A stretch of 51,504 nucleotides of DNA from Parasitella parasitica NRRL 2501 (taxonomy: Eukaryota > Fungi > Mucoromycota), in assembly GCA_025201805.1 (NCBI GenBank), contig MU619358.1, positions 46,032-97,535 on the forward strand, read 5' to 3'. A model generated the notes under the pieces. The model did not search any database, had not been told where the DNA came from, and worked only from the letters and a program-made list of their open reading frames with translations. Numbering within the stretch: the first letter of the stretch is position 1; each line of letters opens with the position of its first letter. This document shows positions 14,931-19,169 of the stretch, one piece after another. A program made the translations under genes and the position numbers.

Positions 14931-17900
14931 TTAATGATCTTCCGCTTGATAAGCAATGTTAGGTTGATACGGAGCGGGGTGTTGTGAAAGTAAGACTTGA
15001 GACGAAGAAGCGCCCTCAGTTCCCTGTCTGGGATACTGGGGATAATCATCAAAAGTCTGATCCTTGGCGTTATTCTTGCCATAGACGTTCTCGTCTATTT
15101 TCTCGCTTCTAGGAGCTGCTCCATTCCCAAAGCTGGTGGGTGGAGTGAATCTACCACTGTCGTTTAGGCTACTACTGGATATGACATTATTGTGGTGATT
15201 GCCTATTGAAGCAAGCTGTCCACCACGATTGGCGTCATCTAGAGATCTAAATACTTCATCATCGACATAGTATGCCTTGAACAGCATTTCCAGCATTTGC
15301 ATGCGCTCCTCAACACGAGTGATACGATTAGGATCTGACTCGTCATAGCCCAAATCCTGTGAATTAGCGAAACGATAGTGCACTGGGTGAACGAGGGGAA
15401 TGCCAGATTCGGTGATTTTGAATTTAGATTGAAGACCACGCAACAAAGAGCGTTTCATGTCACCAACAGACCATCGATGAACAACACCCCAAGGAGATCT
15501 GGGGCGATAACCAAAGAGCCATGCTTGGAATGTAATCAATAAACCAAAGACACCGCCTACAAACCCAAGGGCATTGACCAGTGTGTACATTTTAACCTCA
15601 CGCTCGACAATAGTGGAAAAGGCTTCGGGGAACACAGCCAATAAACCAAGATCAAAATGCGTATTGACGTAGTTTGGATTTGCTCCTTCTTGACGGAAAT
15701 TAGTAACGATTTCAGGAGTAGAATTCGAGATGGGCAAGAAGCCGACATAGTTCCATCCGACATCTTGAAGATATCTGTGATCAACCAAGTTGTACGATAA
15801 AGCACTGTAAGTGGAGGGCTGGAGCGTATACACATTGGTAGCTTGAATGTCGTTTCTTTCATTGATTTGCCAATTCAAAACAGCACTTTTAGACATTAAA
15901 CTGCCTATGGTGTCATTGATTCCGTAAACTATGGTATTGGGGTTCATCTGTTTCGGGTAAACAGAGGTATGTACTCGAGCATAATTGATGGTCTGATCTC
16001 CCCAGAAAGTGAAAAGCAATCTTGAGCCGTTGTTGGCACCAGAAGTCGAGCTTAAAACGAAGTCTGTGGTGGATCTGAACATGAAGCAGTTGACGTCGCC
16101 CAAGTTGTCAGTATAGGTTGGTTCAAACACTGACATGTTCAAAGGTTGAATGAATCTTGTGCACGAATAGCCAGTGTCAGTTTGGCATGACACCCCTGGA
16201 GCTCTGCTATCAGTTGCTGGGTACGAAGGATAGCCGTCGAAACAGAATCTCACATCTGTATACAAATAAGTTGGTGTTAACAACTGAGTCATGGTGGGAT
16301 TTAAGGTAGAATATACAAACCTGGAACCTGGACCTCAGCAGCGGCTGTTTTAATGACTTGCGTGACATTTGGACTATCAACTGCCTGGCGAACAACAAAT
16401 GCCAAAAATACGAAGAAAATAAACAGCAAAAAGACTTGGAATACGATACGAGTAGTTTCTGCCCAGATAGGCTCACCAGTACTATAGGCAGCGGATTAGC
16501 CAAAAACTACATATACGGATAGTGCGACTTACCGAGGCTTCCAAATGTCATGATGAATGCGGTTGATAATGTAGCGAATGTAGGCTTGGAATCTCCAGAA
16601 TAGGAACCCAATGGCGACCACTACTGCTACACAGCCGATGGTAACACCAGCAATCACACCACCGGATATGCCAGAATTAGAACCGTTGTTTGTTGTGGCT
16701 GCGAATGATTGAAGCCACTTGTTGGATTCAAGGTCAAAAACGTTGATATCGTTGTAGTATGTGTCACTTGCAGAACCTAATATATAATAGTTGAGTAATC
16801 TATGATCACATGAAGCGCTAATATAAACACTCACCAAAGGCAACAGTCAGGTATTTATTATTGAACAGGCCAGCAGAAGCATAAGAACGTCGGGATGGCA
16901 GGATACCGTCGGCATGAGGTGAAGTCCACTGCCATGTCTTTGTATCCAAGATGCTGATGCTGTTCAGAAAGGCTTTGGTTCTAGGGCCCTCTCCATTGTC
17001 ACCTGTTGACAGAAAAAAGAAAAAAGCTTAATATATACATGAAACTTGCATTTATAGTTCTAAAAATGCCTTACCACCAAAAACGATGATTTTGTCATCC
17101 GAAGCTAATAATAGAAAATGGTGAGGACAACATATACACATGGAGCGCATTGTAAAACTACTTACTGACGATGGCATTATGCACTGATCTAACGGAGGGA
17201 AGAGGGTTGCCATCTGCTGAAGTAGCCACCTTGGTGTCCCACTGGTTTGTTTTTGTATCAAACACACGGATGCTGGCCATCGAAGCTAAGCCAAGTTGGC
17301 CAGTCGTGCGATCTTGACTCACTCCACCAATGACAACGAGCTGGCCGTTGCTAGAGTCTAGTGCGTTAGCACCTGTAAAAATAACAATGACCACACTACA
17401 ATAAATGGGTTACCTTAGCAACGAGGTTGTGTGAGCATAGGTTGAATCCGCAGCTGGTGGTAATTGTGTAAATTGCTGTGTAGTAGTGTCAAATGACCAG
17501 AGATCGTTAAAGACAAGTGTCTGGTTCAATGAGCCACCAAAAATGTAGATCTTATTGCTGGAGCTCTCGTAGTTTGCGCTGAATAACTTTCTATTTGCCG
17601 GTATAGTGATGTTAGAAGACACGTTTGCATTTGTTGTCGCTGCAGTCCATGTGTTGGTGTCAAAAGCGAATCGATAGTATTGCAAGGGAAGTACTCTGTT
17701 TTCGGTTGCATTTGCCATCCCTCCCATGAGATACATCTGGCTCTCGTTGTTTGTCATTACGGCTTGGGCGTAGTAGGTGCCAGGTGGTGTATTTATCTGA
17801 GTTACGGTCTCCCAGGAGAATGTGCTTGAAAGTTGATCCAGTCTATAAAACTCGTTTTTGTAATGATTTGTAGCGTTTTCACCGCCAAACATGTACAATG

Positions 17901-18033
17901 AATTATTTCTTTGTGCGGTCGCCATTCCTCCCTGAAAAGGCAGATGTGACATGAATGTGTCCACATAAAAGTACGCTTCAGTAGGCGTTAGCAATGAAAA
18001 TATTAGTAAACATGTCGACAGTAGTAGCAACAT
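14931..18033 (-). CDS. Signal peptide + Kelch/galactose-oxidase-like propeller + TM + two-TM module with a large extracellular loop (DEG/ENaC- or PAC-like motifs), multi-exon
   Basis: Signal peptide MLLLLSTCLLIFSLL; Kelch blades LYMFGG, MYLMGG, IYIFGG, LVVIGG, IIVFGG; TM GVIAGVTIGCVAVVVAIGFLFW. Spliced in-frame to IVFQVFLLFIFFVFLAFVV-RQAVDSPNVTQVIKTAAAEVQVPDVRFC and later YTLVNALGFVGGVFGLLITFQAWLFG. Confidence 0.8.
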
Positions 18034-18539: not shown

Positions 18540-19169
18540 ATGCCAAAAACAAGGAGTCAGCAACGAGAGATTGACAGGAAAGAGCGAGAAGCCAAACAGG
18601 AAAAAGAGTTGTTGCGAAGCGCTATTGAGACTTCTCTTGCTAAATGGCCAGCTTCTTTAGATCGTCTAGAGAAGAACATAAACACCCTTAGTACGAATGA
18701 CGATCTATCATTTAACACTGCACCTCAAAACACAAAATACCATCAAGGCAGGCCTCTTGGCAGAGAGCATACTGATCCTATGAACCAACCTTTCAACACG
18801 GACCGTCCGAGCATTTCTGACACTTCAAATGTTCCTAAATTTACCGCAGCAGCCGTCAAAGCATACCAAGCCCATCGCCGCGAATCCATGTTTAACGCAT
18901 ATGGTAGCGACACCGATCCCTCTGCGGAATCTGCAACATTTATATCCAACTCTTCAGGAGACAGCACCACCGTCCTTTCTTTACCCAGAGATCCATTGAG
19001 CAGCTTGACTGTTAACTCGGAACTTGATGAGTTGAGATTCAGGAACAATAGCAATGATCTTATCCAGATTGTCGAAAGAAGGCAATCCGTCTCTTCTGTG
19101 ACATATCAAACAGATTCTTCCACAACTGAAAACTTTTCAATCTCTGACAGGCCCTCACCTGTCCCCTAA
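18540..19169 (+). CDS. Hypothetical Ser/Thr-rich, probably disordered protein
   Basis: 209-aa intact ATG ORF with a charged N-terminal helix. No recognisable domain. Confidence 0.45.
   Translation: MPKTRSQQREIDRKEREAKQEKELLRSAIETSLAKWPASLDRLEKNINTLSTNDDLSFNTAPQNTKYHQGRPLGREHTDPMNQPFNTDRPSISDTSNVPKFTAAAVKAYQAHRRESMFNAYGSDTDPSAESATFISNSSGDSTTVLSLPRDPLSSLTVNSELDELRFRNNSNDLIQIVERRQSVSSVTYQTDSSTTENFSISDRPSPVP

Follow-up and report, generated by a model that had tools for sequence, protein, structure and literature searches.

A gene of the mucoromycotan fungus Parasitella parasitica NRRL 2501 encodes a protein in which an extracellular Kelch propeller is joined to a two-transmembrane module whose predicted fold is that of the ENaC, ASIC and PAC ion channels. 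The gene lies on the minus strand of the 51,504-nucleotide stretch of DNA analyzed here, hereafter the window (contig MU619358.1 of GenBank assembly GCA_025201805.1, positions 46,032 to 97,535), and its coding region occupies window positions 14931 to 18033. The order of domains is a signal peptide, a six-bladed Kelch propeller, a transmembrane (TM) helix TM0, a conserved cytosolic loop, TM1, an ectodomain of ~245 amino acids, TM2 and a conserved tail. On the basis of models of natural homologues, the assignment of the module to the ENaC/ASIC/PAC fold is very probable. The full explanation, that the family is a divergent fungal branch of channels with this fold, is the one that we favor, with appreciably less assurance.

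Apart from rare exceptions among protists, DEG/ENaC channels have been regarded as essentially confined to animals in origin (PMC10507113, PMC9822975), and a fungal family with this fold would, if the assignment is true, shift where the origin of the superfamily is placed. In the literature we found no report of the ENaC/ASIC/PAC fold in fungi, nothing relevant on fungal PAC/TMEM206 or ASIC-like proteins, and no architecture in which a Kelch propeller and a channel-like two-TM module share one polypeptide.

Predicted fold of the two-TM module

Two natural homologues served as folded stand-ins for the window protein, both modeled with AlphaFold2 (AF2) without templates. P0020, a natural Joint Genome Institute (JGI) fragment extending from TM0 to the C-terminal end, was modeled from a 59-sequence alignment; its identity to the window gene is 57% in exon 5, 74% in exon 6 and 69% in exon 7, and its ectodomain is predicted with a predicted local distance difference test (pLDDT) score of >90. 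P0079, the second stand-in, is a full-length protein that includes the propeller.

A Foldseek search of the PDB with the P0020 model gave, among the top matches listed, only PAC/ASOR/TMEM206 or ASIC structures, with E values from 7.5e-11 to 1.5e-8. The first-ranked match was the PAC chain 8zlb_A (E 7.5e-11, template-modeling score by target 0.53), and the same score was 0.53-0.57 for PAC against 0.40 for ASIC. In VIA-align comparisons, ASIC1a reached Z 13.0 over 258 aligned residues with 16% identity (other ASIC1 chains up to 19-20%), followed by ENaC at Z 12.4, FaNaC at Z 12.2 and PAC at Z 12.1, the last with 240 of 278 residues aligned at 10% identity (range for PAC 9-12%); altogether 92 chains were found at Z≥8. 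A scan of 48,161 representative PDB chains that is independent of Foldseek placed ASIC, ENaC, FaNaC, other DEG/ENaC-type sodium channels or PAC in its top 11 positions (Z 10.4-12.8). The next fold was Erv41p at Z 7.8, and after it came trivial helical hairpins. TM1, ectodomain and TM2 are all included in the superfamily matches, which run over 230-258 residues. The palm and beta-ball type of fold that the original prediction had anticipated is thus the one recovered, the only strong structural matches being ASIC/ENaC/FaNaC and PAC. A P2X-like fold was also considered and rejected: no P2X chain was present among the matches listed from Foldseek, VIA-align or the 48,161-chain scan.

Of the 404-451 residues of ASIC chains, 230-258 align with the fungal model by VIA-align. 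Because the ectodomain is PAC-sized, the large thumb and finger regions of ASIC are probably reduced or missing in the fungal protein, as judged from the model.

It is formally possible that the resemblance represents convergence or a prediction artifact, such that the module would be an unrelated beta-rich luminal domain between two anchors, as in an Erv41/Erv46-like trafficking protein, with a glycine-rich helix giving rise to the matches with the Pfam ASC (amiloride-sensitive channel) family described below. Among matches beyond the superfamily, Erv41p ranks first (Z 7.8 over 168 aligned residues), and it too has two TM helices; moreover, every sequence match to known channels is sub-threshold. 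Nevertheless, a gap of 2.6 Z units separates the 11 superfamily chains from Erv41p, the superfamily matches span TM1, ectodomain and TM2 jointly, the models are template-free with pLDDT >90, and the sequence-based and structure-based alignments of TM2 agree to about one residue. We consider convergence or artifact very improbable. The Erv41p match itself is to the luminal domain of the yeast protein (3zlc_B), and it aligns with P0020 residues 98-333, equivalent to window positions ~16380-15590.

Trimer model

Modeling of three copies of P0020 residues 56-388 gave a predicted homotrimer with TM2 at the axis. The interface score ipSAE (interaction prediction score from aligned errors) was 0.60 (runs 0.55, 0.60 and 0.65), whereas the best of three controls scored 0.00. 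The runs share at least 64% of their contacts, with partner pLDDT at or above 69. In the calibration, which is based on dimers (two copies and not three), 21 of 30 proteins solved as one-chain pairs attained this ipSAE mark, as did 0 of the 23 whose solved form is a single chain. The predicted interface is of the kind expected for this superfamily and consists of the palm strands and TM2 residues 338-353, with axis contacts 342:342 and 345:346, and these contacts of TM2 are made by the glycines of a conserved G-x-x-G-G-x-x-G face.

Sequence relationship to DEG/ENaC and PAC

The sequence signal points to the same superfamily at a low level. Pfam ASC (PF00858) matches exon 7 of the window gene with 9.5 bits (E 0.58; residues 201-240 against profile positions 403-442), where the gathering cut-off is 23.6 bits. 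ASC is the most frequent Pfam match in 57 members of the family that lack a Kelch domain (33 of 57, best E 3.2e-4) and the only recurrent non-Kelch match in 77 diverse representatives (22 of 77, best E 6e-4); the cut-off was reached by none of these 57 members and 77 representatives. When the ASC model was searched against the whole 32.8-Mb genome in six frames, the one match, at 20 bits, was to a paralog of the window gene. Family profiles searched against all PDB sequences ranked ASIC2 or ASIC1 first, at E of about 1. A profile of the 137-sequence alignment gave mostly Kelch matches; with a Kelch-less profile, all eight matches at E≤10 are ASIC1 or ASIC2, aligned at beta12/TM2.

In the profile alignment, the family motif LG-x-[IV]-GG-x-x-GL lies opposite the LLGDIGGQMGL of ASIC, and an invariant Gln lies opposite the Ser of the Gly-Ala-Ser (GAS) selectivity belt. 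In another segment, which does not score, V-x-C-[FY]-L-F-R is set against GKCYMFN of ASIC2. The original prediction had drawn parallels to ASIC, and these are real but weak: ASC or ASIC is the top or only match in every profile search, in each case before and within TM2 and without reaching significance. The prediction had also noted that the GAS belt is absent, which is correct, but had placed I-T-F at that position; the profile alignment sets the Gly-Ala-Ser of ASIC against T-F-Q (exon 7 residues 241-243).

No comparable sequence signal was found for PAC. Pfam TMEM206 (PF15122) gave no match at E≤10 in the 57 members or at E≤1 in the 77 representatives. It is nevertheless possible that the protein is a proton-activated anion channel of the PAC/TMEM206 type rather than a cation channel, perhaps endosomal or vacuolar, whose selectivity for anions would be set by basic residues at the inner end of TM2. 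The ectodomain is PAC-sized, PAC aligns over 240 of 278 residues with Z 12.1, and PAC holds the first Foldseek rank with the higher score by target (0.53-0.57 against 0.40 for ASIC). An invariant Arg-Pro-Arg directly follows TM2, and a protein-language-model feature search of the Atlas found a TMEM206/PAC cluster at 0.82 (P0020 residues 56-392, window 14934-16253). Against this, identity in the structural alignments is 9-12% with PAC and 16-19% with ASIC, the Pfam search is negative, and the profile matches are all to ASC/ASIC and none to PAC. We regard a PAC-type anion channel as rather improbable. The same Atlas searches returned, below the Mucoromycota clusters of the family itself, ciliate and plant clusters with PF27811 "Y80K_N" at 0.83-0.86, with 167-174 shared features; the PF27811 and TMEM206 clusters may represent further eukaryotic families with a related two-TM fold.

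The two-TM module is covered by no Pfam family in the window exons, the 57 members or the 77 representatives. Because the GAS belt, the His-Gly motif and the cysteine-rich thumb are absent, and because there is no PAC sequence signal, we assign the family to neither ASC nor TMEM206 and place it as a third branch of this fold, one found in fungi.

Gene structure and transcript

The minus-strand reading frames between 18033 and 14931 include Kelch motifs and an open reading frame (ORF) of 453 amino acids. The coding total is 2733 nt, or 910 codons and a stop; translation of each exon and a phase check found in-frame stops in 0 of the 7 exons. The six introns are each of GT..AG form, 51-72 nt long and compatible in phase. 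The features of the gene, all on the minus strand, are as follows.

14931..18033, minus strand: whole coding region, seven exons (18033-17414, 17350-17166, 17104-17075, 17002-16835, 16776-16533, 16481-16321, 16255-14931), 910 amino acids and stop; from exon translation and phases, the X1 contig and homologue tblastn
17414..18033, minus strand: exon 1, signal-peptide-like N-terminus and first Kelch blades; seven N-glycosylation sequons; Pfam Kelch E 1.8e-23
18033-17974, minus strand: signal-peptide-like stretch, first ~20 amino acids, hydrophobic; judged by eye only
17166..17350, minus strand: exon 2, Kelch blade with Pfam Kelch_2/Kelch_1 matches; junctions 17414/17350 and 17166/17104 present in X1
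17075..17104, minus strand: exon 3, a 30-nt micro-exon encoding SDDKIIVFG within the propeller (homologue consensus SDDKIIIFGG)
16835..17002, minus strand: exon 4, Kelch blade; from the X1 contig, translation and homologue tblastn
16533..16776, minus strand: exon 5, last Kelch blade, TM0 and the cytosolic loop up to its midpoint (..RIHHDIWKPR); P0020 residues 1-59 are 57% identical
16663-16595, minus strand: TM0, a long helix in the models (P0020 residues 17-57, P0079 residues 370-393)
16321..16481, minus strand: exon 6, pre-TM1 motif TGEPIWAETTR, TM1 and first ectodomain strand (SPNVTQ..VQVP); 74% identity to P0020 residues 61-113
16447-16391, minus strand: TM1; helix 65-94 then strand 98-106 in the P0020 model
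16390-16321 and 16255-15588, minus strand: ectodomain, ~245 amino acids between TM1 and TM2
15588..16255, minus strand: exon 7, first part, ~222 amino acids of ectodomain; four invariant Cys, four sequons; 69% identity to P0020
15507..15587, minus strand: TM2, YTLVNALGFVGGVFGLLITFQAWLFGY, with a glycine-rich face and an invariant Gln; candidate pore-lining helix from hydropathy, conservation and profiles
15432..15506, minus strand: post-TM2 cytosolic motif, RPRSPWGVVHRW (RPRSPWGVVHRWSxGxxxxSLL), nearly invariant family-wide
15240..15323, minus strand: conserved helix in the cytosol (RVEERMQxLExLFKAYYVDDEVFRSL), coiled-coil-like; modeled as a helix at P0020 residues 420-459
14934..15239, minus strand: C-terminal tail, variable in alignments; P0020 equivalent, residues 462-540, at pLDDT <50

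A single 4023-nt contig of the public run X1 extends from 14878 to past 18300 and lacks exactly these six introns (CT..AC on the plus strand). X1 is the only public run that contains the stretch, is stored as Logan contigs, and has its RNA nature guessed in its record; the contig derives from spliced RNA, because introns would remain in genomic DNA. The last Kelch blade and TM0 are both encoded within exon 5, which is spliced to the exon for TM1, and therefore the propeller and the two-TM module share one mRNA. Separate Kelch and two-TM genes, one of the outcomes that would have refuted the initial proposal, are accordingly not what the contig contains. In tblastn, full-length homologues of 890-1142 amino acids (Radiomyces, Apophysomyces and Pilobolus) align collinearly along the locus. 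The two junctions that had been spliced by hand are both right (KP-CG|T, and CCA-G|AT at 16321/16255), except that the acceptor of the first is at 16481 and not at ~16491, and the motifs quoted from the translation, DSPNVTQVIKTAAAEVQVP|DVRFC and EREVKMYTLVNALGFVGGVFGLL, are present exactly as quoted.

The X1 contig also extends ~970 nt 5' of the start codon, in the region from 18034 past 18300 (to about 19270). This extension would span a divergent plus-strand ORF at 18540-19169 (209 amino acids, Ser-rich). Overlapping transcripts, a long 5' untranslated region or an assembly merge are possible causes.

Topology and the Kelch propeller

Exon searches, hydropathy and the homologue models bear out the domain order that had been read from the sequence, from signal peptide through Kelch, TM0, linker, TM1, loop and TM2 to the tail, as well as its extracellular loop of ~245 amino acids with few cysteines, of which the family alignment contains four invariant ones. 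Seven sequons are present in exon 1 and five in the TM1-TM2 loop, and basic clusters follow TM0 and TM2. Because of these sequons and basic clusters, the sequence fits a topology with the Kelch propeller outside, the loop inside, the ectodomain outside and the tail inside. Hydropathy, sequons, the positive-inside rule and AF2 thus agree on a DEG/ENaC-type arrangement, in which two TM helices flank a large ectodomain and the pre-TM1 loop and tail are cytosolic. Conserved ectodomain motifs in exon 7 are VRFCFDG, CQTDxGYSC, VNCFxFR, NNGSRLLF and WNYVGF. The cytosolic helix at 15323-15240 gave weak matches to the GCN4 zipper (E about 1, family profile against PDB sequences), and the C-terminal tail at 14934-15239 is probably disordered, as modeled.

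Kelch repeats (PF24681, PF24981, PF01344 and related families) are clear in the N-terminal exons: exon 1 reaches 83.5 bits, where the cut-off is 50, exons 1 and 2 are both above Pfam cut-offs, and exon 5 has Kelch matches below threshold only. The AF2 model of P0079, an 890-residue protein of Radiomyces (pLDDT 82.3, predicted template-modeling score 0.75), contains six four-stranded blades at pLDDT >90, followed by TM0, a short cytosolic helix, TM1, a beta-rich ectodomain and TM2. Searched with Foldseek, this propeller matched Kelch domains of known structure (E 1.9e-19), among them those of plant specifier proteins, LZTR1 and KLHDC.

Family distribution and conservation

The last exon retrieves 77 proteins, and all of those with an organism name belong to the Mucoromycota. 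Nine genera are named: Choanephora, Pilaira, Mucor, Zychaea, Lichtheimia, Chlamydoabsidia, Umbelopsis, Rhizopus and Phycomyces. Both Kelch and module are present in the NCBI models, which are about 590-770 amino acids long. In a profile search of 1.84 billion representatives, at least 300 clusters (50% identity) lay within E≤1e-3, of which 135 were within E≤1e-30; among the best 150 of the 300 matches, every named member is mucoromycotan.

Members from Jimgerdemannia (Endogonales) and Funneliformis (Glomeromycotina) have neither Kelch nor TM0 and start ~25 residues before TM1, with a related motif, R-x-S-E-P. A search from these Kelch-less members found only Funneliformis, Jimgerdemannia and one JGI protein, and none outside the Mucoromycota, by a word-limited method that does not show absence. 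The two-TM module on its own probably came first, and the addition of Kelch and TM0 is a feature of the Mucorales and Umbelopsis. The existence of the Kelch-less module in Endogonales and Glomeromycotina therefore makes the propeller an add-on and not an obligatory gate. One Funneliformis geosporum protein (P0214, 727 amino acids) contains two Kelch-less modules in tandem, which is either a real fusion or the product of neighboring genes merged by the annotator.

The P. parasitica genome has five paralogs. The four besides the window gene (contigs C117, C40, C96 and C7) have 67%, 39%, 38% and 38% identity over the module, and at least three of them have Kelch-like exons 5' of the module. A short family fragment with an in-frame TAG on contig C91 may be a pseudogene remnant.

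Across 137 representatives, mean column entropy is 1.95-2.03 for TM2 and the post-TM2 motif and 2.6-2.8 for TM0, Kelch and ectodomain, and the pre-TM1 motif W-x-P-R-x-G-E-P-x-W-x-E is found family-wide. Since TM2 is the most conserved helix and TM0 is less conserved, TM2 is probably functional and pore-lining, and the sequence of TM0 fits a plain anchor.

Conservation of this kind could also be explained by a protein with the same fold and trimeric assembly that is not a channel, namely a surface receptor or scaffold whose ectodomain and Kelch propeller bind wall or ligand molecules and whose conserved cytosolic loop, together with the RPRSPWG motif and the coiled-coil tail, signals to partners in the cytosol. 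Conservation of the cytosolic parts equals that of TM2, suggesting that they bind partners; the DEG/ENaC motifs for selectivity and gating (GAS and HG) are missing; and the TM0 segment has weak sub-threshold Pfam matches to type-I surface families (VSP, Syndecan). However, all characterized proteins of this fold in the PDB match lists are ion channels, and the Gly-x-x-Gly-Gly-x-x-Gly face of TM2 is conserved in at least 137 representatives and is placed at the threefold axis in the trimer model; a plain anchor such as TM0 lacks such conservation. We therefore think a non-channel receptor unlikely and continue to favor a channel.

A proposed model for a putative fungal receptor-channel

In our model, the protein would be a three-pass membrane protein in which the C-terminal two-thirds (TM1, ectodomain and TM2) represents a branch of the trimeric ENaC/ASIC/PAC-fold superfamily that is specific to fungi and very divergent. 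In the Mucorales and Umbelopsis, the module would have gained a signal peptide, a six-bladed extracellular Kelch propeller and TM0. Three subunits would join around a threefold axis via palm beta-strands, and the glycine-rich, highly conserved TM2 helices would line a central pore. The three propellers would flank the crown of the ectodomain, binding either a ligand or a component of the wall. The pore would open when the ectodomain moves, and the propeller, along with the conserved loop and tail in the cytosol, would modulate this movement.

Several points weigh against this model. The hallmark motifs of DEG/ENaC are not found: the family has a-i-Q (T-F-Q in the window) opposite the GAS belt in the profile alignment, and in the family alignment there is no conserved HG before TM1, where the consensus is W-x-P-R-x-G-E-P-x-W-x-E-x-x-R, and no cysteine-rich thumb in the ~245-residue ectodomain with its four invariant Cys. 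No ASC or ASIC sequence match is significant, and the ASC matches are limited to the pre-TM2/TM2 region, where the glycine-rich helix also draws unrelated membrane families (YqhR). The ASC search rose above its cut-off in the Thermotoga control, which weakens the sub-threshold matches. The structures were modeled from homologues in place of the joined window protein, and Erv41p, a two-TM component of a cargo receptor, has part of the same beta domain (Z 7.8). The trimer result may reflect model memory of solved ASIC and PAC trimers, and its calibration used dimers. The RNA nature of run X1 is only guessed in its record. Finally, ion flux, plasma-membrane location and a gating role for the propeller, as well as ion selectivity and the gating stimulus, are parts of the model that we infer.

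The Thermotoga maritima result is an observation in its own right. We know of no DEG/ENaC in this bacterium, and the match above the cut-off may be a six-frame false positive or an unexplored bacterial match.

A bolder reading extends the channel model in time and function. The Mucoromycota would hold an unrecognized deep DEG/ENaC-PAC branch that predates the animal-fungus split or was transferred very early, and in the Mucorales it would have become a covalent receptor-channel in which three TM0-tethered propellers sense a ligand or wall strain and gate the pore. We put this forward tentatively, as a possibility that we would not expect to hold in all its parts.

If the model is true, the fungal module would be a natural minimal form of the fold, PAC-sized but closer in sequence to ASIC, and could help to decide whether PAC and DEG/ENaC are homologous. 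The fusion of an extracellular propeller would be a new architecture for this class of channel and a tractable model for tethered or ligand gating. The Mucorales include agents of mucormycosis, for which there are few drug targets, and a fungus-specific, channel-like family predicted to be surface-exposed would be of interest in that respect.

Comparison with known systems

The absence of recognized DEG/ENaC from model fungi, which the original prediction had stated, agrees with two phylogenetic studies that place these channels outside animals only in heterokonts and filasterean relatives; one of the two studies searched Fungi by BLAST, with no candidates listed (PMC10507113, PMC9822975). The fungal family resembles these non-metazoan channels (heterokonts such as Cafeteria, and the filasterean relative Tunicaraptor) in representing the superfamily outside animals (PMC10507113, PMC9822975). 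In contrast to the Cafeteria and Tunicaraptor homologues, which are detectable by BLAST with animal queries and cluster with ASIC/ENaC clades, the fungal family is too divergent to be found in that way.

Single-pass proteins with extracellular Kelch propellers of the attractin/LZTR1 type (PF24981) and the KLHDC2 type (PF24681) are similar in having a six-bladed propeller followed by one TM helix. The fungal protein differs in that TM0 leads, within one polypeptide, into an entire two-TM module of channel-like form.

Descriptions of PAC come mainly from vertebrates. The fungal module is like PAC/ASOR/TMEM206 in being a minimal form of the fold, with near end-to-end alignment, a similar ectodomain size and few cysteines. 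Basic residues lie at the inner end of TM2 as well: in human PAC, Lys319 there sets anion selectivity, and in the fungal family the invariant R-P-R, a possible counterpart, directly follows TM2. Unlike PAC, with which it has no detectable sequence similarity (9-12% identity in structural alignments and no Pfam match), the fungal protein has Kelch and TM0 added.

With DEG/ENaC/ASIC the fungal protein shares the succession of TM1, beta-rich ectodomain and TM2, and the same overall fold (Z 12-13); a trimer with TM2 at the axis is also predicted for it. The ASIC post-TM1 motif is FPAVTLC, to which the fungal P-x-V-x-x-C is parallel; the fungal TM2 sequence L-G-x-[IV]-G-G-x-x-G-L resembles LLGDIGGQMGL of ASIC, and the Cys-aromatic-x-Phe strand motif resembles GKCYMFN of ASIC2. 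Unlike ASIC, which has an ectodomain of ~370 amino acids bearing thumb and finger with about 14 conserved Cys, the fungal ectodomain is ~245 amino acids with four invariant Cys, there is no His-Gly before TM1, and a-x-Q replaces G-A-S. Unlike DEG/ENaC proteins in general, the fungal protein has an extracellular N-terminus, with signal peptide, Kelch and TM0 preceding TM1, and a long, conserved tail with the RPRSPWG motif and a coiled coil, and its host is a fungus.

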